This document shows, in pieces, positions 9,336 to 25,128 of a DNA stretch of 64,000 nt. The translations under genes were made by a program, and so were the position numbers. The stretch is from Hyaloraphidium curvatum SAG 235-1 (Eukaryota; Fungi; Monoblepharomycota). Numbering within the stretch: the stretch's first letter is position 1; every line of letters starts with the position of its first letter. The stretch lies in assembly GCA_025558095.1 (NCBI GenBank), contig JAIVFI010000019.1, forward strand, positions 186,001-250,000. The letters run 5' to 3'. The notes below the pieces were generated by a model, which saw only the letters and a program-made list of their open reading frames with translations, ran no database searches and was not told the DNA's origin.

Positions 9336-11077
9336 CTAAGTGGCGTGGGCTTCGAGCAAGGTCTGCTGCAACAGGTCCAGATCCTCGTTCCTGAACTCCG
9401 ACGTTTCCGCTTTGGGTCCATTGGCGCCGTAGACAAGGGTCTCGCCCGTCTTGCCGTACTCGGGAAAGTCCTCCCCGGGCCTGCCCGAGGCAGCAAAGTT
9501 CACCCAATGGCGCACCATCTTCTCCGCATAAGCGCGTTCCTCCTCCGTTAGCACGTCCTCCCGGAACATGACGAAGGGCACCTCGGCGAGGTGCGACACG
9601 CGGAGGTTGGCAGGGATCGAGTCCACGGGGCGGGTGAAGCGGTAGCGGAAGGTGGGGATGCCCTGCGCCGCGGCGATCTTGGCCGAGGTGCGGACGGGGA
9701 GCTGGAACAGAGTTTCGTTCAGGATCTCGTCGACGGCGCTGAAGAAGGACCTGGAAGGGGCGAGTTTGGTGAGCTGGAAGCACAAAAGGCGGAACGAGAC
9801 GCGCAGGCATCGCACCCGTATTTCTCCTCGTAACGTTTCAGCAGCTCGTCGGTTTTGCCCTTGAACATGGCCTGGAGGAACATCTTGGCCAACGCCTCTT
9901 GGCCCGGTGCGCAAATCAGGGCGGCAAACAGGGAACCCCTGTGCGACGGCGGCAACGGTAAGGCAACGAGCTGCCAATGCGGATTGTTCACGCACTCGTC
10001 CGCGTTTGTTCCGCATAGCAGTGCGTCGACTCCCTTCTTGGCCAGAAGGGGCAGGTTCTTGAGCAGCTCGCCATCCGCGACCGGGGCCCATGATCCCCGG
10101 GGAGCCATGTTTGCCATGGCCGCCTTGAGTTCCTCGCCCGTTTTTCCCAGCAGAAACTCCACTTTTGCAACCCCTGCCTTGTCCTCGGGCCCGCCGGCCG
10201 CCTTGTACAGGGCGTCGAAGTAGACCTGCGCCGCCTCGATCGGTCTCGGTGCAGTGCTGCTAAGAGCGCCGCTCTGCAGGATGGCGCGGCGAAAGAGGCT
10301 CTCGTGCCCGAAGAGCACCGAGAGGTAGTCGCACGAAATGGCGCCCGCTGATTCGCCAAAGATGGTGACGTTTGAGGGGTCCCCGCCGAACGCGGAGATG
10401 TTGTCGCGAATCCACATGAGGCCGAGGCGCTGGTCGTACTGTCCATGGGGCCCACGTGAGCGAGTGCAACGGTGCTCAAGGGCTGGCCTACCAAGCTGAG
10501 GTTGGTCCCGCCGGATCCATCCTTGCTCCATTCCTTGAGCTCCTTGCTGGCCAGGAATCCAAAGACGTTCAGGCGGTACTGAATCGCCACAACGATCACG
10601 GGAGTTCCCAGCTCCGCGGCTTTGGCGACGAGGTTGCTGCCGTCGTACAGCGGCGTCGCGGCCGAGCCCTCTCCAAAAGCACCGCCGTATATCCAGCACA
10701 TGACGGGAAGATTGGTTGCAGTAGTCTGAGAAGAAAGCTACGTCGGCCACCGCGCAACGGAGAAAGGTTGGCGGACGGCTCACATTCCCGGGCGCCCAGA
10801 CGTTTAAGACGAGGCACTCCTCGCCCTGCTCGGCATTGTGAGTGTGTTCATAGTATTGCGGCTTCATCTGCAGCGGCGCGAGCCCGGAAGGCATCTGCAG
10901 CGGCACCGGGCCGCGCCTTGACGCATCCCTCGTCGCCTCCCACTTCGGCGCAGGTCGCGGCTTTTGCCATCGCGGAGCTTCGCCGAAAGGGATCCCCAGG
11001 AATGCGCGAACTCGGCCATCGAGCATCGAGGTGCCTTTCAGCGCGCCCTGCGCGACCGTCACGTCGAGTTCGGCCAT
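9336..11077 (-). CDS. Type-B carboxylesterase/lipase, multi-exon
   Basis: [56 protein letters not shown], catalytic His region SHLAEVPF. Confidence 0.93.
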
Positions 11078-11128
11078 GGGGAGAAAAGGGGGGGGGGAAG
11101 GAAAAAAGGGAAGGCACGGTTGAACCCT

Positions 11129-12250
11129 TCACTCCATCACAGATCTAGCTCGCGCAGCCGTCTCCACGAGGTCCATGAAGACTTTGAACTTCTTCGAATG
11201 GAAGTCCCGGAGCTCGGGCGTGGGATCGCAAGCAACCAGCATTCCGCTTCCTCCCATCGCCAGCATTGCATCCGAGTGTCCCGCGGCAAGCGCGCCCGCG
11301 ATGGCCGCGCCTCGAACCGATCCGTGTTCCGCGTCCGCAGGAATGAGGATGGGCACACCCAGGATTTCGGCGTGGAGCCGAACGAAGAGGTCGTTACGAG
11401 CAATGCCGCCCGACATGACGACCTCATCAACAGCAACGCCGTGGTCCGCGCTTGACGATCTCCCGCGTCCCATAGACCAGGGCATGAAGGCCGGCGTAAT
11501 AGAGAATTGCGAGCGAGTCCAGGTCCCGAGCGAGCGAAAGCCCGACCACTGATCCAGCAGGGTTCGGCGACGGGCGCGGTGATCGGTTGCGGGGTTGGGG
11601 GGCGCTCAGCGCCTGTGATAGAGATCTGATCGGTTGCCGTGGTGATCAGGTAGGATGTGGAGATGTTTGACGAGAAGATCTGGGATCAATGGCGTGGTTA
11701 GCTGGATCTCGATGGCAATAAGTTGAACAATCCTCACTGGGAAAGGCCAGCTTTTGCTCCACCGCAAGATCGATGACTCTTTTGTTGAGCAAATCAAACA
11801 GGCCCTGCCCGGCTCGGTCCGCAAGCTCTTGGCCTTCGGCGTATGCCTCATGGTTCCTGACCAAGTGATCCAAAAGGCTGCCGGTGGAGCTCTGGCCTCC
11901 CTCCAAGGTCCACTCCCCATGAACCGTCGAGCCCTCCTGTGGGCCCCAGATTCCAGGCACGAGCACTATCCGATCCGTGTTAATCAAGTGACACGAGGAG
12001 GTACCCGCAATGACGACTAGGCGCCGAGTTTTCCCAGTCCCGGCATCTCCTAATACCCGATCGGCGCGGCAGCCTATAGTGCCGACGTATGCAGCATGGG
12101 CATCGATCAGCCCTGTGGAGCAGGCCGTGCCAGCAGGCAAGCCCAATTGTCTGGCGGCCTCAGCCGACAGTCCCGCAGCAACTGGTGCGCCCACGGGCTT
12201 TACTTCCTTGGCATTACCGATCCTAGAATAACCTTCTGCAACAAATTCAC
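11129..12250 (-). pseudogene. FGGY-family pentulose/carbohydrate kinase, C-terminal half only, frameshifted
   Basis: GLIDAHA, IAGTSSCH, VPGIWGP, EGGQSSTG, PDHHGNRS, SGG. N-terminal half absent; frameshift near 11450 (YGTREIVKR / ADHG). Confidence 0.85.
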
Positions 12251-12765
12251 CGGCTTCCAGGGTGGCACCACCGACATTGTCGAACATGAAATCGATTCCG
12301 TTCGGGCACAGTTCCGCGAGGGCTTCCGGCGTGGGGCGCTTCTTGTAGTTGAACACCGCGTCGATCCCAAGGTTGTCCCGGATGTAGGCGCACTTTTCAT
12401 CCGTGCCGGCCGAGCCAACGACCCGCAGGCCGGGGACGACCATTTTGCAGAGGACCACGACGCACTGGCCCACGGCGCCCGCGGCGCCCGAGACGAAGAG
12501 GGTCTCGCCGGAACGCGGCGGGTCGAAGTTGTGGAACAGGCCGACGAAGGCGGTGAGCCCCGGAGATCCCAGGGGCCCGACGTAGTAGCTGAGGGGCACG
12601 TTGCCGTCCCCTCCCTTCCCGTCGTCCGGGCACCCGACGATCATCCTGTAGACCTCCATCGCGTCGATCTGGTCCTTCCGCAGAACCTGGTAGTCGCTCC
12701 AGGCGGTCATGATGCTCGACACGACGCTCCCGGCCGATATTTCGCGTTGCGCAACTTTAGAACCC
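12251..12765 (-). pseudogene. NADP-dependent alkenal/prostaglandin reductase (PTGR1-like MDR), internal fragment
   Basis: LGSPGLTAFVGL, GETLFVSGAAGAVGQ, VGSAGTDEK, FNYK, GIDFMFDNVGG. Both ends are missing. Confidence 0.85.
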
Positions 12766-13070
12766 TCGAGGCCGGGCATCGCCATCACGGCCTTGTTGCT
12801 CGTCGCGCGGCGCTGTCGGAGGAGGCTGGTCTTGGCGAGGATGAGGGAGCCGGTGCAGACTGCGCGATCCCGGGTCAGCAGGGTTCTGAGGGTCAGGACG
12901 GGCAGGATGTGCGGTGAAGGTGGGGACAGGCCGGTGAGGACGAAATTGACGTCTTGGCGTTGGCCTCCTGCGGGAAGCTCCCGTACAGCCGCCGGGCAGG
13001 AACAGTGGTGGGGGGGACGTCTCCATCACCCACTGGCCGCTACCGACGTCCCAGCCAATGCCTCGCCGAA
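12766..13070 (-). pseudogene. DJ-1/PfpI family fragment
   Basis: LFLPGG, then in another frame FVLT(intron)VCTGSLILAKTSLLRQRRATSNK, the nucleophile-elbow motif of the family. Frameshifted and truncated. Confidence 0.65.
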
Positions 13071-13429
13071 ATCAAGCAGTCGAGGCTAAGCAGAAGGGCG
13101 TTGTACACGGCGCGAAGCAGAAGCGCGCCGTGTCGCAGCGGAAGTCCGGGCGCCCGAAGGCCGTCGTCAGCGCCGGTGCGGTTCGGGAGCCCCGAGATGA
13201 CGTTGCTGCGCGGAGACGTGAGCGCGCCGCGCCCGGCCCTTCCCGGCTTGGGAAGTGACCAGATATCATGTAACAGGCAAGGATTTGGCTGCGGGCGCCC
13301 GGAAGCGCGAGGCCCTCGTGGAGTCGGAAACCTCGGACACTTCGGACGAGGAACCGCAGCCGCCGCCGCCCGTCCCGGGTGGACGGCGAAAGCAGGGGAC
13401 GCTGGCGCTGCACGAGATCAAGAAGCTGC
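13058..13429 (+). pseudogene. Divergent histone H3/CENP-A-like N-terminal fragment, truncated before the histone fold
   Basis: Basic tail; intron ~13176-13276; RRKQGTLALHEIKKL matches H3 RYRPGTVALREIRRYQ; sequence breaks at 13429. Confidence 0.6.
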
Positions 13430-14921
13430 CATTTTCCTCGGGCAGATACATGTCGTAGTTCGAATCGTAGCCTGCGAACCGGATGCGATACTTGATCCGG
13501 CGCCCGGCCTTGCGGTGGCCCATGATCGCTTCGACCTCGAACTCGGGGTCGTCGGGATGGTCCACATCTTCGTCGCCGTCGCCAGGTTCTTCAGCCGGCA
13601 CGTCCTCCCAGTCCTCGGCCTCCTCGGATGACTCTGCCACCGCAATCAGGTCGTCCAGGTCCACTGCTTCCACCTTCTCCTCGATCGCAAGCTTTTCCAG
13701 TCGGTTCTCCAGCTCGTCCAGCTCAGCAGCACGAGCGCGGAGAAGATCTCTGCCGTCCCCGACGGCTTCCAGCACGCCGTCGTCCGGCTGGATAGCATGC
13801 GACAAGGCCGTCGCCGGGCCCTGGCGGTACTTGGCGGGCAAGCTGTCCAGATACAGCGTCACCGCAGCCAGCTTTGCTTCCAGATCGTCGACTTTTTCGT
13901 TCAGCATCTCGAACTTGGCGCCCACGACCTTGACCCCGTCGCTCACCGCGTCGACCTTTTCCGACACCATGTCGACCTGATCGGTCACCATGTCCAGTCT
14001 GGCCGACGACAGCTCCGCGTCGACTCGCAGGGCACGAGTTTCGAGGGCCATCTGCAACCCGGCGGAGCGCACCTCGGCCAATCCGGCAGCCAACAAGGCT
14101 GTGGCACATTTCAGCTCGTCGACGTCATCCTGCACGGCGGTGTCGACCATGGGAACGACCGGCGCCGCCTGGGCCCTTTGCAGGGCCGCAACTTGGGATA
14201 CAAGGTCGGCGACAACAGATGCACCCACATCACGCTGGTGCTCGAGCTCCGCCATGCGCGCGGCCAGCGAATGATTGATCTCCGAGGTGTGAAGCATTGC
14301 ACCGGGCACGAGGGCAGGAAATGAGAGTGGGGCGCCGAAGGGGGAAGGTGCGGGCAGGAATGGATGTGCGATGATCGCGCCGCCGAGGTGGTGGGGCGCG
14401 GCCGGCGGGTACGACGGTACAAATGCGCCGTGCTGGGGGCCATCACTCGTAAGCACGAGCGGCAGGTGATGAGGAGTGGGAACGGCGGAAAGGGGATGCG
14501 GGAGTCCAGAGGTGTCCAGGGGGATGCCCTGGGCCGTGAGACCGCGGAGCCTCGCCAAATGAACGGCCCCGCCAATGCGCGGTGGGAGCTGGGCCACCGC
14601 CACCCTCGTGTCGGCGGCCAGAACCGCGACCACGAGGCGGAGGTCGGAGAGGTCCAAGTCGCTGGTCCCGCGGTGGTGGCTGCCATAGTGCTTGTGCAGG
14701 GCATTCAAGGTGCCTGCCCAGTCCTCGTGGCACTCGGGGAACGGGCACAGACATTCACCGGCGGGCCCGGGGACGGCCGATCCGCCGTTCTGGCGGACCC
14801 TCGTCAGCAGCCCGGCGTCCGACGCGGCCAGGTCCACGACGCGGCTGCCGCCCTTGAGGGACACCGCAACAGGGCGGCCGACGCTGTCGAGCCGGACGTA
14901 CGACGTGCGCAGCGAGGTCAT
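13430..14921 (-). CDS. C2H2 zinc finger + coiled-coil + chromodomain protein, 3'-truncated
   Basis: CPFPEC-x13-HYGSH, heptad repeats (VDMVSEK/VDAVSDG/VKVVGAK), acidic linker, chromodomain EFEVEAIMGHR...YRIRFAGYDSNYDMYLPEEN cut before its terminal helix. Confidence 0.75.
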
Positions 14922-16659: not shown

Positions 16660-19145
16660 CCAGAGGCTCATCCACCTTTCTGCTTCGCAACTAAGAATCA
16701 GCGTTGCTCGGCGCTGCGAATTACCCACCATCACCACGGGCTTGTAGAGCGTAGGATAGTCCTTCTTGAGCCGGGTCTGATGGGTCGTGGTCAGCAAGGC
16801 AGGCCAAATGGATACTGCGACGTAAGTCGCCCACGTTCACTTCCACGGCGTTGTTGTAGTGATCCCGCTCACGCTCCGTCGGCTTGCCGGCGAAGAAGGT
16901 GACGTGCTGCTCAATCATGGTCCGCAAGTCTTTGAAGACCTCGGCCATGGATCCGTAGGTGCCCTTTGTCAGCTTCTCCACGACCTCCTTGAGGGTGATC
17001 GGCTCGGGGTATTGCAGGTAGAAGCCCGGATCCGAATCCCGGAAGGGCCCATCGTCCAGATATATGGCAAACTGGTAACTATGAACCCAACGTCAATGCA
17101 TGTGCCAGGCCCAGCCCAGCCCGACTAACCCTTCCTTGTCCGCGTACGATCGAATCTTCTTGATGATGTCGAGACCCTGGCTGCGGACTTCGTCGTCGGC
17201 CCTATCCTGTCCGCGGAATCGTTAAGTCAGGCGTCGGTGCCTTGCAGTTCGTTCGGTGAACAACCAACCTGCGCAGCAGAACCTTTGGCAGCCCGTTGCC
17301 GCGACTCTTCAACAACCTCGCGGTACTCGGGCAGCTTCCCGAGGTACTTCTGCGAGCACCATTAGGGACCGAAACTGTTGGATCCCGGTCACCCACCTCG
17401 ATTGCGGTGGCAAACTTGTACGGGTACGAGCCTTGCTTGTTGTAGAACTTGGCGTTCGACACCATCAGGTGGAGGTCACCGAGAAACTCGTAGAAGGATT
17501 CGTAGCCGCCGGTCTTGATGTTTCTCTCAATGTCGGAAAGCGCAATGGGCTCTTGGACGAGTGCCGAGTAGCCAGGAGCGATGTTGTCCGTTGGTATCAC
17601 CTCGAAGATTGAAGCAATGAGATAGCTGCGACGGACGAGCTCAGCTATGCAGTCACTCCGGATCTCGGATCTTGCGCCACGTACCCTTCAGACTCCAGGC
17701 CCCGAATCCCGGCAACGATATCCTTCATCCGCTTCTGGAGCTTCTTGTCCACCTGGTCCACGACATGGGCTCAATGCGGTCCAAACCACAGGGAGGAAAA
17801 TGCCACTGACCTTGGGCACGACCGTTAGGGCAGCCTTGACGCCGGCAGGCCTCTGCTTCCTGTCCGTGGGCGCCTCGTCCTGCGAACGGGACCTCATCAG
17901 ACTCCCAGCAGCGAGCACCAGCGACCGGTATACCTACCTCGTCGACTGCAGTGGCATCCGATGCCGTCGGCGACGCCGGCCGGAGCTGCGGTAGGTCGTC
18001 GCCTTCCGCCTCTTCCTCGTCCGCCGTCAAGGCCACATCTGCCACGCTTTCTTCCTCCTCCTCCTTGTCCTCCTCGTCCAGCACCACAGCCTTGCGCTTC
18101 GCTGCGGCGGGCTTGCGGGGCGCCGGGATCGCGTTTGCCGTGAGCTCCGCGGGGACCTCCGCGCGCTTGCTGCGGGTGCTGCGGTCGCTGCCTTGAGCAA
18201 CAGCTGCCTGGTACTCCTTTGCAACCCTCTTGGAGGGTGCGATCGGTTCGATCGGCGACGGCTCCCGGTCCCGAGGCGGAGCGCCTTCCGAGCGATTCCG
18301 TGGAGGCGCGCGGGCTGCCTTCTTGAGCGCGGCGAGATCTGCGAAGTCGACGGCGCTCAGCTGCCTGAAAGAGAGAGCGAAGAAGCGCCCTACCCGGTAA
18401 AGGAGCATCGTCGTCAGACAAAGCAACGGGTTCTTTCGCCGCCCTTTTCTTGGGACCTCGCGGCTTCTTCGGCGGGTCCGCCGCTCCTTTTTTGCCGTCG
18501 TCGACGACACCTGTCGTGGGTACCTCGAATCTCTACACGGCAGCCCGCGGTCAGCACGGTGTCGGCGAAGTGCGACCGGGCTTGCCTCACCCTCCCGAAC
18601 CCCCTGTCTTTGCTTTCCTTCGGGATCCCACCGCTTTTCCCTTCCTCGCGACGCCGTGCGGCTTCCTGTAGCTTCCGGACCTCCTCGATGCCGGCGGCAA
18701 CCACAAGAGCCTGAGCCGGAGGGCGTGAAACATATGAGCTCTTGGACTGCTTCGAGCCGTCCACTTGCCGACGCACCCTGACTTTGTTCCATGTGTCATC
18801 TTTCACCAGGTTGCCAATGAGCTTCTCGAAGCGAGAGGTGTTCGTCTCGGGGGTGTCGAAAATCTTGAGCGAAAACGCCTCCAGTAGGGCACGCTGCCCC
18901 GGTTCCAGGTGGTTCCAGACGCGCGAATGACTGTCTCGGATAATGTCTCCGAGAAAGAGCTCCGCAGCGGGTCGCTCCGGCTCGTCGTCGTCCGATGAGG
19001 GCGGGGCACGAGGACCTGGACGCGCTTCGGGAGAACGCGCGACCTTTCCGTCGGGTTTTCCGGGGCGACCGCCGTCCGCATCGCGCATCTCGCTTCCAGT
19101 GGCAGCCTTCCCGCCGCCCCTGCGGCCGCGCTGGGGGGCGGACAT
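16660..19145 (-). CDS. Tandem bromodomain protein, multi-exon
   Basis: BD1: APGYSALVQEPIALSDIERNI..GGYESFYEFLGDLHLMVSNAKFYN. BD2: PGFYLQYPEPITLKEVVEKLTKGTYGSMAEVFKDLRTMIEQH. Charged low-complexity N-terminal half. 3' end approximate. Confidence 0.8.
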
Positions 19146-19289
19146 GTCGATGTTCGCGAGCGGAAACTCGCGTCTCCCAACGCCAACAGCTTCCGACGTC
19201 AACAGCTTGACCAATCAACATTCCGACGAGCTGGCAGGCTGGAAAGGGCAGAATAGGCCGTCTATTGCGACGGCAAGGACGCCCCCGGC

Positions 19290-22200
19290 CCGAATGGACG
19301 TTGATCTATTGGTCCGTCCGCGGTAGGAAGCCTGGACAGGCATCAACGATAGATCCGCCGCCGCTGTCAATAGATCCGATATCTCCATTACAAGAACATT
19401 TCAAGAAGAGCATCAGATCTTCCTCTTTGACGGGTGATTGATCCGCCTGCTTCCTCCGGGAGACAAGTGAGCCTCTTCGGAATCCGGTGGCAACCCGCAG
19501 TCGCGATTCCGCTTCGTCACCCCGTCGCGCATCACGGGGCGCTCGTGCGTCCGGCCGCGCGGCTCGCCTTCTGCGGCATTGTTTTTGCGCGCTCCGGGCC
19601 GCGGCAACCTCGTTAGGCCGTCGAGAAAGGCCTCGGAAGCTTCGGACGCGACATCCCGAAACCGGCCCGATGTGGGGCCCCGGGGCTGCACCGGCACCGG
19701 AACACGCGTAGTTTCTCTTGTTCCTCGTCGCCTTGCCACTTGACATGCCTTTCGATTCGAGGAACCCGGATCTGCGATGGGAGGGCCACCGGGCCGGCCG
19801 TTTCGGCAACCTCATTAACCGAACGACTTTCCAAACGGGACTCGAGCAACAGGCAGTGGTCTACGTCATCGAATGTCTTCTCAAGTGCGTTTCCATCGCC
19901 CGGGACCGCGCGGTGCCCCACATGGCGTTCAAGGGAGCCTACGAGGCGGACCGTATCCTGGCGCACCCCGACGTGGACATGATGAGATACGATGACCAAC
20001 TCGGCATCCTCCGGCCGACGGGTAAGTTATCTGAATGCAGCTCAATGTCTCAGACCTCGCTGACGACGCCTCATTCGCAGATTTTAGCCCGCTCACCGGC
20101 GACGTCGAGTACGCGGACAATTACATCGCCACTTCGGAGTTCCACATGTTCGGTGACCATTACCTCGCTTCGTGGGATCGCGACGGCCAACTTTTGTCGG
20201 GACATTGTGAGAGCCGCTTCGGTCTTGGCTTCGGGTCGCTTTCTGATGACCGTTCACGCGTCAGTTCGCGACCCGCTCGAGATCCCTCCCCACTTGTGGG
20301 AGATGATGCGTATAACGGATAACGATCAGGACTTCGAAAAAGCACTGAGGGTCGAATGGCCCGGGCGGCCATGTAGGTTTCGGGTGCATTTCACGGCTGA
20401 CAACAGTTGACATTGCGTCCAGGGGTCTCGGAGGGCACCAAGCCGCCATCGCCTTTCGAGACGTCGTATCGAGCTTTCCGGGATCGGTTCATTGTCCCGG
20501 CAATGCACGAGGATTACGGTCAGGGTCTTGGATTTCCTCTTGCTTTCGACATGCTGACATCTTCCTCCCGACAGAGTGGCCCGACGGAGATCGTGCACCG
20601 CAATTCGACGTCCACGCGGCAGAAGTAGACCCCTCGCCGGCACACCTTCGCTGCATTCCATACCTGATGGGTCACGAGATTGTGAAAGACATCAGTGGAG
20701 AACTGGAGACCAGTGAGTCCATGCATCATGCGTCTTGCACTCTTCCTCAGACTGACTCCTCCTGTAGGCTCTCGAGCACTTTTCACAGAAAACTTCATCG
20801 ACTACTTGGATCGGTTCTTCAGGGCGCTCGTGGACGCCTGTCCGCACACGCAGAACCTCCACCCGGATGACCGCAAGCGTCTTCGTAAGCACTTCATTCT
20901 CGACTGCGTCTTGTTGTCTGACGGGCTCCGCGTCTCTCTCGCAGTCAAGCGTATGCGGCTCCTGGTGTCGCCACGCGTGGTCAAGAGCCGCATGCTCTTC
21001 TTCATGATGCTGTTCTCGTCGGCGTTCCTGTTCGAGGGGATCCACTTCCCGTCCGACGTCGCGCCCTACGTCAACGCCCGGCGCGCAATTGCAGGCATGA
21101 TTTTGTGGGTGCTTTAGCGTGCGTCGATGACTACGATCGTCCCTGATTTCGCTCCATCAGACGTGCTCGGCGATGGCTTCAGACCATCGCCGATTCCATT
21201 CGCGATCTCGCGCCTTGGGATCCAGAAGTTGCTCCGACGGAGGAGAACCTGTCGTCGCGCGTTCATGCTGGTTTCTGGGGATACGTTTTCGAGAATGACA
21301 GGCTCGCCGCGTCGCGCGCGCGTGGCTTCGTGCGGTGAGCTCCGTCGTGGTCATCTCTTATCCACTTTCTCAATCCTTGCAGGCTCATGTCCTTCGCCGT
21401 GCCTCCGCCGGTCAAGACGCACCCCAAGGCCAAGGTCGACCCGCCATTGAAACTCTACTCGTCGCATTGGAACTTCACCGTCGGTGAGCTATGATGTGCG
21501 ACAGGCCGACTGGATCTGTCTCTCACGCCCGTTCCTCATCAGATTCTATCAACATCTCGGGGAATACGGCGGCTCGAATCCTGGCCTTTCTCCGTCTTGC
21601 CGTGAGCTTCCTTCTGCCGATGTCGGCGGCAGTCTTACATTGTCATGTCATGTCACAGGACATCCCTTTTCTTCCACCTGGCTGGCAGCAGCCGGACCTG
21701 CCACCTTTCATACATCGAACCAAAGCTCGTACTCTAACCGGTGGCTTTTTCATCACCGCCAATGGCGCGCCTGCCAAAGGCGACCAACTGGCGCGCATGC
21801 AACTTCGTACCCAGGCCGAGCTCTTTCAACTCGAGCGCAACAAGGCGCTCGTCATGAACAAGCCAGCTTTTGCCGACCGCCCCCAGATCTTCTCCAAGCC
21901 TATCACCATGTACATCAACAAGGGCAACGAGTGGCGTGATGGTATGTCGTTCGTGAGGTTCGGTAGCAGTTGTGGGCGATGACGACGATGCGGCAGGAAA
22001 AGCGAGTGAAGGCCCGATCCCCGTCAACAACTATTTCGTCAACACGAACGCCACCGATTCGTTCCACTCGTATCTGCTCAACACCCGCGGCCTCTTGAAG
22101 TCCGACCCTTTCAAGAAGCGTGAGTTCCACGGCATCGCCGCTGCAGGCTCATCTAACGCAACCCAGGACGACACACGACTTGGCAAGAGCTGAACGGCCC

Positions 22201-24078
22201 GCGGTTTCGTCGTCCGCCGCGGCACTACACGCCGCCGGACCCGGCGCTTGTTGACGGGCAGTTTAACGACCTTACTCTGCAGCCCGTCACGCCACATGAG
22301 CAGTGGTACCAGCCAGGGCAGACCAGTCTTGGGGCCGATCTTGGTGAGAGCTTGGACGCCGCTGCACCGCCGCAGACCGCTGGCTGATGGTGCTCGATTC
22401 CCAGGATTTGCATTCGGCATTGTCCTCGTCAACCTCGACCTCGTCCTGGACCCGCCGGACCCCGTCGGCTTCTACGATGTCGCCGGTCGGGCAAACGTGA
22501 AGGAGACGCAGCGGGAGAATGTGCGGAAGCTTCGCGGCCGGACGATTCAGTGGGTCTTCGTTGACCTTCTGCGCGGACATCTGAACTGATTACTTTGTAC
22601 AGGAAAGTCCAAGGCGGGCAACGTTTCAATGCCCTCATGCGACGCTACAAGACCGACGAGATCAAGGGCAAGTAGCGCACCGCCGTGGTCGGTCTCTCTT
22701 TTTCCTCACGCACTCCAACAGATGCCGAGGACTTCCTCGAGGGACAAGTCGTCGAGTTTGAGCACGGCGCATCGCTGGAGTCCATGGGCTACTATCTCGC
22801 CAAGCGCCACTTTGTCTCGCCCACGTGAGTCGCCTATCGCTCACGCAGTCGGAGCGTTGACTTTGTTTCGGCAGCCTTCGCGAATTCTACATGTCCCGGC
22901 GCCACCGCGCTATGGTCTTTGAGCGTCGCACTACAAGACAGGCCACCAATTACGACCTGCAGCACCACCTGCTCAAGACCGGGGTTTGTCACCTCTCTTC
23001 CCCGCGCCACTGCGACTGAAGTCTACTTCCCGCCTTCCAACAGATGCCATTTACCCTCCGCCGGCCTCGGCCGGGCAACGCGCGCGAGGAGGCGCAGGGG
23101 TACCGCTACTTACCTTTTGCCTGGCCGTTTGCGCGCCGCCAGGCGCCCAACGGCAAGCGGCACCACACTGCCAACCGCAAGACCAAACGAAAGGACCGGA
23201 AGAAGTGGAACGACCCGTCGATCGTCGACAGCCGGTTCCGCGCCCCCGAGTTTCAGCGCCCGCGCGGCTTTCCGAAGCCGGTCCGCATCGCCGTCGGCAA
23301 GAAGGGCACGAATCCGGTTAAGTGCTACCCGCCCATCGGCGTGCGGGTGAGTTGGAAGCTCGGTCATACTCTGCAGCTTCTGAGCGTCGCACCGACAGGC
23401 AATCCTTCGCACGGCCATGTTCGAGGGTGTGCACCTCGATGGCATGCCCGAGACCGGGACCAGCGGCACGTGCATGCCGGCCGTCGTTGCGGACGGAGGC
23501 ACCGGGCACAAGATGAAGTACGGCAAGGTTACGATCACCATTCATGACTCGGATCACCAGTGAGTGATTGCCAGACGCTTCCGCCGACTCTTGCGCTGAG
23601 CATCTGGCGGCGTGGCCAGGACGAGACGCCGGAACGACGGCACCAAGCACCATAGCAAGCGGTTCTGTGTCACGGAAAGGGTCCCTGTCACGCAGTGCAC
23701 GACTCGTGACGAGAAGGGTGAGCTACGGCGCTCTCGACCTTCTTTGGCTCCGTCCTGACGCCCTGCTTTCCCCTTTCCCCCCCTCTAGATGTCAGCACGT
23801 GGCGGCTCTTGGTCTGCGGGGCGGCACAGGCCCAGCAGCACGACCACGGCGGTCACCAGCACCTGATCCTTCCCCGAGCCCGAGGGAGGGACGAGACTGT
23901 CTACAACCGCGACGTGCCCTCCGCGGGACTCATGATCTACAACAACCTCTACGCCACCGAGAACCGCGGCGCCCGCCCGCCGTACAACCGGAACAAGTGG
24001 TATCGCGGCCCCGTGCCGCAGCGGATCTGGGAGGGCCACCCGCCCGACCAGGAGCTCGACGCCGCGGGGATCGGGTGA
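19290..24078 (+). CDS. Spliced XPG/FEN1(PIN)-like nuclease fused to a Fanzor/TnpB-type RuvC endonuclease
   Basis: XPG-like motifs: IFLFDG (19417-19434), GAYEAD (to 19951), ASWDRD (20167-20184), EDYGQGLGFPLA (~20510-20545). Fanzor-like motifs: FVNTNATDSF, LGADLG (D 22337-22339), LREFY..R...FE, VRIAVG, GMPETGTSGTC (E 23450-23452), WRLLVC, YNRDVPSA (D 23911-23913), GARPPY. Introns from ~21.66 kb to the stop splice in frame. Start codon and 5' exon structure uncertain. Confidence 0.78.
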
Positions 24079-24112
24079 GTCGCTCGATCCCCCGGCGTCG
24101 GGCCGGGGGCGT

Positions 24113-24192
24113 CGATACCCTATTACCCGCGATACCCCTCGGACTCTCCTCTATACCACCGTCTCCTCGATACCGTTGGTCGCCCGATACCC
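24113..24192 (+). repeat. Cluster of short CGATACC direct repeats
   Basis: CGATACC at 24113, 24130, 24168 and 24185, plus variant CTATACC at 24151. Confidence 0.7.
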
Positions 24193-24214
24193 TCCTCTCC
24201 TTATTGATAGAGTA

Positions 24215-24420
24215 GACGGCTCTCGGGAGCCGGTGCTAACCCGTGGATCGGCTGACCATAGCGATCTGCGGGCGGGGCACCATCATCTAGTTCACGCGCG
24301 AGATACAGACGGCGCCGCATACAACGGCGTGTGATCAACTTGTCATCGCATGAAGTGTAGCAATACAGTAGTTGGATCCACTTGCTAACCCGAGCCCGAC
24401 GAGGGTTCGCTCGGTCCACT
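24215..24420 (+). ncRNA. Candidate Fanzor omega-RNA scaffold
   Basis: Consecutive stems just 3' of the RuvC gene, two with G-U pairs: 24240-24250/24262-24272 and 24292-24299/24327-24334. Confidence 0.5.
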
Positions 24421-25128
24421 CGCGCCGGGATAGACGCGGATGTGCAGGAGCGGACGGAGTGAGACGTGCGGGCACTTGTGTGCGGCACGTCGGAGCAGTA
24501 GACTTGGCCGCGCCAGATCGGCGCGCCTCAACTTCGTTCCCCACCCACCCTCCCCAGCTAGCTAGCGCAACCAAAGCCGTCGAGGCAGGCGAGCCTGCCG
24601 CCTTGGCGCACCGGGCGTTCTCGCCCCTGAGCCCAACCGCGCTGGCCAGCCAGGAGAGAGGCTGAGAGGACGCGAGTGGAGCGGGGAGACACTCGGGATT
24701 CCTGAGGAATGTTCCATCGCCGCGATGCACAACCATGACCTCGTCTGATTGGTCCTTTCCGCCGGCATCGTTTGACGAGGTCCAAAGACATGTCGGGCTT
24801 GCCTGGGATTCGGAGTTTTGGAGCGTCCCGGATTTCCCCGAGTCGGTCATGCCGCGGACGCGCGACAAGTCGCCCTCTAGCTCTCCTTGGTTCGGATCCT
24901 CCGATAGACGAGCGTCATCTCCGGCAACTGTGGAGCAGCCAAGATGCATGACTTGCGGGATCCGCAGCCTATCGATTTGGACGGTTGACTCACGTTCCAG
25001 CCTTCCAGAGCCTCGAACGAGTTCTGTGACGTCGCTCTGACTCCCGCCTCCCAAGCAATTCACATCGAATAGCATTCAACCACAAACCAGCATCGCACGT
25101 AACCACAGCAACGAGCACACACCCCGCG

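Follow-up and report, generated by a model that had tools for sequence, protein, structure and literature searches.

A Probable Fanzor1-Lineage Gene and Its Candidate Omega-RNA Locus on a Mobile Element of Hyaloraphidium curvatum

Introduction

A run of short exons in the fungus Hyaloraphidium curvatum SAG 235-1 raises the question of whether they join into a gene for an RNA-guided DNA nuclease of the Fanzor1 type. The exons lie in a stretch of 64,000 nucleotides (nt) (assembly GCA_025558095.1, contig JAIVFI010000019.1, positions 186,001 to 250,000 of the forward strand), hereafter the window, in which an earlier sequence-only reading had placed an intron-rich, very divergent but probably intact Fanzor at 21650-24078. 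The analysis described here points to a larger gene, which most probably encodes a very divergent RNA-guided DNA endonuclease of the Fanzor1 lineage and sits with a candidate omega-RNA locus on a non-autonomous mobile element. All similarity searches were made exon by exon, with the joined protein used for the frame check, residue numbering and codon counts, and the genome searched comprised 31.9 Mb in 55 contigs. A literature search found no paper on Fanzors of H. curvatum.

Gene Structure, Second Copy and Selection

Splicing in silico yields an unannotated gene on the + strand (the strand of all window features below unless stated otherwise) running from an ATG at 19745 to a stop at 24078, with 20 exons giving an open frame of 1090 amino acids (aa). 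Its 19 introns are 47-71 nt each, 18 with GT-AG and one with GC-AG borders, at a density of 5.8 per kb. Exons 1-9 (19745-20021, 20081-20206, 20265-20372, 20423-20518, 20575-20712, 20768-21104, 21161-21334, 21383-21483 and 21543-21601) probably encode an enlarged WED/REC lobe, and exons 10-20 (21659-21941, 21997-22119, 22167-22343, 22405-22549, 22603-22667, 22722-22824, 22875-22983, 23044-23346, 23399-23559, 23620-23717 and 23789-24078) hold the WED, RuvC and TNB regions.

A second copy of gene and element, about 90% identical to the window copy and with it constituting family A, lies on another contig at C20:294023-299566. All 19 donor/acceptor pairs are kept there, the intron-5 donor GT being intact beside a 4-nt deletion, and small insertions or deletions (indels) between the two copies are confined to introns. 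Across 1089 codons the synonymous divergence (dS) is 0.30 and the nonsynonymous divergence (dN) 0.039, with dN/dS 0.13 (p about 1e-59); the ratio is 0.094 over exons 1-9 and 0.14-0.18 over exons 10-20, with 0.175 for the RuvC half. The reading frame is thus far beyond chance and the protein is under purifying selection. The C20 gene copy is itself probably broken by a 300-nt foreign insert in exon 18 (L002:5826-6125, at window position 23518), which by eye resembles a DJ-1/PfpI or GlxA-type gene fragment, has no Pfam match and lacks splice ends.

On this comparison the window locus is a real gene of H. curvatum, larger than first described. The sequence-only reading placed its motifs correctly and overlooked 470 aa at the N terminus, the existence of a second copy and the limits of the element; its gene start near 21650 gives way to 19745, with nine further exons under purifying selection, the ATG at 21650 falling within intron 21602-21658 and being absent from the second copy. 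Its introns 22344-22404, 22668-22721 (GC-AG) and 23347-23398 are correct and kept in the second copy, while for 22120-22167 the intron itself is sound with its real end at 22166, an end at 22167 reading GG. The motifs that it named do fall in one stop-free spliced frame: TDS (22053-22061), D (22337), REFY (22879), VRIAVG (23281), E (23450), WRLLVC (23800), D (23911) and the terminal GARPPY. An exon 6 acceptor at 20788 was rejected as it reads CG in the second copy whereas 20767 is conserved, as were coding exons 5′ of 19745, with 19260-19744 showing no coding pattern and an upstream FDG stretch reading FAG in the second copy.

Evidence for Fanzor1 Identity

Direct Pfam, PDB and homolog searches having failed, a Fanzor1 profile was built from intronless giant-virus genes, and this matches PpFz1, SpuFz1 and GtFz1 at E < 1e-52. 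The ordered chain of Fanzor1 motifs scored no better than shuffles in the raw six-frame DNA of the window. When the validated exons were each scored separately it reached z 3.97 (0/500 shuffles), with z 4.02 for the paralog P0002 described below and z -0.8 for reversed exons. REFY, VRIAVG, E926 and NRD were found unaided by this exon-wise chain. In hhalign comparisons the exons for RuvC-II and RuvC-III fell into the register expected of them, at scores that were weak and not significant.

The catalytic positions of the sequence-only reading, D 22337, E 23450 and D 23911, hold and correspond to D665, E926 and D1036, all of which are present in both family A copies. E926 (E926-x6-C933, 23450-23473) is the alternative RuvC-II glutamate preceding the first zinc-finger cysteine and was aligned unaided to DEFRTSC. 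D1036 (23911-23913) in YNRD, assigned to RuvC-III by the motif chain, hhalign and spacing, comes after the finger and is followed by GARP at Fanzor1 spacing, the NRD...GARP distance equalling that in a clear Fanzor of the same genome. The putative RuvC-I aspartate D665 (22337-22339, LGADLG) is placed by its LGxDxG motif and by an intron at the equivalent place in the paralogs, where the motif reads LGNDFG. The candidate counterpart of the TDG motif in the Fanzor1 WED domain is TDS (T586-S588, 22053-22061), 78 aa before D665 and shared with the paralogs, which was not the top-scoring site and, like RuvC-I, was not picked unaided by the chain search. A REC-like motif of Fanzor1 is found in exon 6 (20773-20832, ENFIDYLDRF against viral HYVEYIERY; best-of-protein P 0.016), and a match to the first REC helix was not significant. 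A basic patch at residues 849-864 (23167-23214) may serve as a nuclear localization signal.

The paralogs, family B (P0002; KAI9024605.1, KAI9003040.1), occupy three loci that are 91-93% identical (C12:184383, C20:594400 and C41:429516; L030-L032), with fixed right ends and differing left ends. They are collinear with the window gene exon by exon at about 30-38% identity per exon, share 13 introns at equivalent places and have a first exon that likewise encodes 92 aa from the ATG, the database record being a 782-aa hypothetical protein without the first exons. Their catalytic set is D-D-D, an Asp replacing the RuvC-II Glu, vs D-E-D in family A. A profile of the last exon retrieved two database proteins, both hypothetical proteins of H. 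curvatum belonging to family B, and none from the window's own copy; no relative outside the H. curvatum genome came from this search of 1.84 billion representatives, and other homolog searches returned H. curvatum proteins or nothing. By language-model features in the ESM Atlas, P0002 is nearest to giant-virus clusters of PF07282/DUF8286, at 0.96. The in-exon motif chain, the collinear paralog family and the language-model match of that paralog are indirect evidence that together makes a Fanzor1 identity likely. A Fanzor2 of the IS607 type, a short protein beside a serine recombinase gene, was rejected, the protein being 1090 aa and the element without a second gene.

The N-terminal exons also prompt the reading of a two-nuclease fusion with an N-terminal domain of the XPG/FEN1 type, in which AYEAD (exon 1) and WDRDG (exon 2) would be XPG I-region motifs and would account for a protein that exceeds most Fanzor1 by some 400 aa. 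At these places family B reads YETN and WNTD, hhalign gave a probability of only 0.1-0.2% against the genome's own XPG_I domains, and the locus is absent from the PF00867 listing. The FDG stretch upstream falls in the region rejected above as non-coding, and exon 1 was modelled as one long helix across EAD, with fold matches only to generic helices; Pfam and PDB searches of the exon-1 alignment found nothing. The acidic residues of an N-region together with I-region EAE/EAD and DxD were not found, and a fusion of this kind is very unlikely.

The Mobile Element and Its 3′ Tail

The element common to the window and C20 spans 19145-24367 (5.2 kb), beginning TGT and ending ACA, and the two copies sit at unrelated sites with differing flanks. 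Neither a transposase gene nor terminal repeats longer than TGT/ACA were found within it, and Helitron ends were rejected for want of TC...CTRR. The 5′ non-coding region (19146-19744) is 14% diverged between copies with substitutions that show no codon pattern; it contains a short motif at 19478-19495, by eye like one upstream of family B genes, that is a candidate promoter element.

Downstream of the stop lies a conserved non-coding tail of 289 nt (24079-24367). It has diverged by 4.2% between the two copies vs 8.7% for exons and 12.2% for intron cores (p 4e-5 for tail vs intron cores), and the 301-nt tail of family B shows 2% divergence vs 7%. The copies agree through 24367 and then diverge abruptly, so that a conserved 3′ end reaches the element boundary and is followed by variable flank, as in the known arrangement of omega-RNA loci (PMC10432273, PMC10530073). 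The same terminal motif stands on family A and family B tails, with seven occurrences in the genome and none in the control. It is also seen at two more loci, C16:618401 and C23:130618, possibly a third family or gene-less copies. The final 4-bp hairpin of the tail covaries between families, being altered on both sides, and all five sequences are also able to form another helix of 5 bp. No Rfam match was obtained for the tail. From its conservation and position, the tail looks like an omega-RNA locus and is a candidate scaffold.

The right flank (24368-24387) would be the guide. Only 9 nt of the original flank remain before a dispersed repeat resembling a miniature inverted-repeat transposable element (24377-24680, strand unassigned; ends TCCAC...GTGGA; about 20 genome matches), which lies outside the element, is inserted in the guide region and has no visible target duplication, and the native guide of the window copy is therefore now chimeric.

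The C20 Insertion Site and a Possible Cut Scar

The C20 copy sits between divergent host genes, PET191 and a BAR-domain gene (RVS167-like), and is flanked by a 47-nt direct repeat (293983-294025 on the left, 299567-299613 on the right) that is unique to this site in the genome; at the left junction, element and repeat overlap by the 3 nt TGT. Neither the window copy nor the family B copies showed such a long duplication, the left ends of two of the latter lying outside the DNA compared. The left repeat differs from the right in one respect, the lack of 4 nt at a distance of +12-15 to +14-17 from the end of the element. Published cut positions are after bases 14-17 for GtFz1, and after 16-17 and 20-21 for SpuFz1 (PMC10432273), and a rough estimate puts at a few percent the chance that one neutral change would be both an indel and placed within the cut window. 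Since the left repeat holds a guide-matched target beside its original upstream motif, the natural interpretation is a scar left by repair after self-cleavage, and in this one case the 4-nt loss is best read as such a scar.

By analogy with known Fanzor1 biology, the spliced protein would enter the nucleus and bind an RNA made of the tail and about 15-20 nt of flank, and the complex would recognize a short motif 5′ of a matching sequence and cut 14-21 nt into the match. A cut at the empty site would favor restoration of the element by repair copying, in line with the homing model reviewed in PMC13565253. Mobility would need outside help, which could come from a transposase acting in trans or from capture of the element while a break is repaired; the long duplication and the TGT overlap at C20 fit capture. 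At C20 the insertion would have duplicated 47 nt of target, leaving a full guide match beside a natural upstream motif, and this match may then have been cut by the enzyme.

A bolder version can be offered tentatively, as a possibility rather than an expectation: that a remodelled Fanzor1 lineage (1090 aa, Cys/His TNB, guide locus of about 290 nt), missed by current profiles, is active in its own host and spreads without a transposase by break capture, that the long target duplications are then cut, and that the 4-nt deletion at C20 is a natural editing scar pointing to the target-adjacent motif (TAM), located 5′ of the target and ending GAAG. For the role of Fanzors in their own hosts the C20 locus provides a specific test case, in which the guide is known, a TAM can be proposed, the right repeat preserves the unedited target and the position of the cut is predicted.

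Weighing the Evidence

A number of results count against a Fanzor1 endonuclease. No exon of the window gene gave a significant match to Pfam, PDB or the Fanzor1 hidden Markov model (HMM), and neither did P0002. The RuvC-I motif is DLG in family A and DFG in family B rather than DPG, which is near-exclusive at this position in Fanzors (PMC10711439), leaving a D-hydrophobic-G of the kind seen in TnpB; both MAFFT and the chain search moreover placed RuvC-I elsewhere than D665. The CxxC...CxxC of the C4 finger is missing, its first and third cysteines being kept and their partners replaced by conserved His/Cys. In the Atlas, P0002 scores too low in recognition to pass the trust line and the last exon of the window gene has no usable match, and an AlphaFold model of P0002 from the viral Fanzor1 alignment reached a predicted local distance difference test score (pLDDT) of 38, with no Foldseek match. 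Folding of the whole tail is no better than shuffles (z -0.58), and the 4-nt indel at C20 may be either a left deletion or a right insertion.

The finger had been described in the sequence-only reading as replaced by Cys/His ligands, and such residues are indeed present with counterparts in family B (C933, H945, H961, H972, H973, C978, C988, C1004, H1017 and H1019; 23471-23862, no CxxC pair), forming a remodelled TNB; the locus is absent from the PF07282 listing. The fold check that it had called for was run on the paralog, and with pLDDT 38 and no fold match the model is too poor to settle a RuvC fold. Its proposal of a divergent, probably intact Fanzor gains from the E926/Cys and NRD...RP spacings, the exon 6 REC motif and the 3′ tail, and loses from the lack of a significant profile or fold match, the DLG and the remodelled finger.

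The lack of a significant sequence or fold match, together with the chance-level chain in raw DNA and the confinement of relatives to this genome, would also be expected if a mobile element of the fungus encoded an orphan protein of unrelated origin, with Fanzor-like motifs by chance and a tail that is a DNA-level end signal. Such an origin is highly unlikely given an in-frame chain of z about 4 in two families only some 30% identical, the Atlas match of the paralog, the exon 6 REC motif and a conserved 290-nt tail that is far longer than an end signal.

Fanzor1 ancestry could also be combined with RNA-guided binding in which cleavage has been lost or is weak, leaving a programmable DNA binder or a partly domesticated factor. 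The non-DPG RuvC-I, the remodelled finger, the Asp for RuvC-II Glu in family B and the missing transposase all fit such a factor, as do the chromodomain and bromodomain genes adjoining the window copy and the precedent of an intron-containing Chlamydomonas Fanzor1 without cleavage in vitro (PMC10530073). Loss of cleavage is nonetheless unlikely in view of the three acidic residues in both family A copies, the dN/dS of 0.175 in the RuvC half, the unlike flanks of the two copies and the indel that the C20 repeat carries in the cut window. A divergent Fanzor1-lineage endonuclease remains the preferred reading.

Other Fanzors of the Genome and Neighbouring Genes

Several more ordinary Fanzor families are present in the H. 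curvatum genome. Ten near-identical loci (L040-L049) carry a Fanzor with a C4 finger, with 99.9% identity for the pair measured, a sharp right end and differing flanks; this family is recently spread and is a good candidate for activity tests. The 3′ end of the window element resembles that of this third, recently spread family to an extent that is not significant (P 0.15). Further Fanzor families lie at L036, L037, L038 and L050-L052, of which L036 and L038 exceed the PF07282 cut-off and strongly match the viral Fanzor1 profile.

Beside the element in the window is a bromodomain gene region (17202-19145, - strand; PF00439 E 9e-15 at 17205-17600), single copy in the genome, whose candidate start codon overlaps the first base of the common element and which may belong to the host or be carried as cargo by a larger element. 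Beyond it, 13266-14921 (- strand) holds a frame of 551 aa that includes a coiled-coil stretch and matches a chromodomain weakly (E 6e-4), and 10000-13005 is a patchwork matching C19:543889, C3:950379 and C17:232457 with abutting ends, resembling captured gene fragments.

Comparison With Known Systems

The closest parallels in motif order are SpuFz1 of Spizellomyces punctatus (8GKH) and PpFz1 of Parasitella parasitica (9CF0), with which the window gene shares a candidate WED TD(G/S), a putative RuvC-I Asp, the FY helix, the alternative Glu six residues before a Cys and NRD...RP. It differs from both in its DLG rather than DPG, its lack of CxxC pairs, its 19 introns and in going undetected by the Fanzor1 HMM. 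At 1090 aa it exceeds the 600-700 aa usual for Fanzor1, and its D-E and E-D spacings are 261 and 110 vs 158 and 65 in SpuFz1, PpFz1 providing a precedent for a RuvC insertion of roughly 100 aa (PMC11423790). In keeping with fungal Fanzor1, a conserved non-coding stretch runs from the stop to the element end and the element has no transposase of its own (PMC10432273), but the tail is about 290 nt vs about 80 and 30-nt inverted repeats are missing.

CrFNuc of Chlamydomonas also has spliceosomal introns, and its guide locus lies within a 3′ untranslated region that is conserved (PMC10530073), but it resides in Helitron2 elements, of which neither the transposase nor the ends were found at the window element. 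Introns in a Fanzor are ordinary, since intron-containing Fanzors are already known and reach about 9.6 introns per kb (PMC10530073). The giant-virus Fanzor1 (PF07282/DUF8286), whose clusters are nearest to P0002 by language-model features, differ in being intronless and about 650 aa long, in having DP for the RuvC-I motif and in retaining a C4 finger, and show about 20% identity in a forced alignment. What is new compared with these systems is the size, the loss of two hallmarks, the failure of profiles to detect the gene and a cut scar that may be natural. Because the lineage escapes Pfam, the Fanzor1 HMM and protein databases, clades of this kind are probably overlooked in surveys of Fanzors, and with a long guide scaffold and a TNB module that is not C4 the family would span a wider range of structures.

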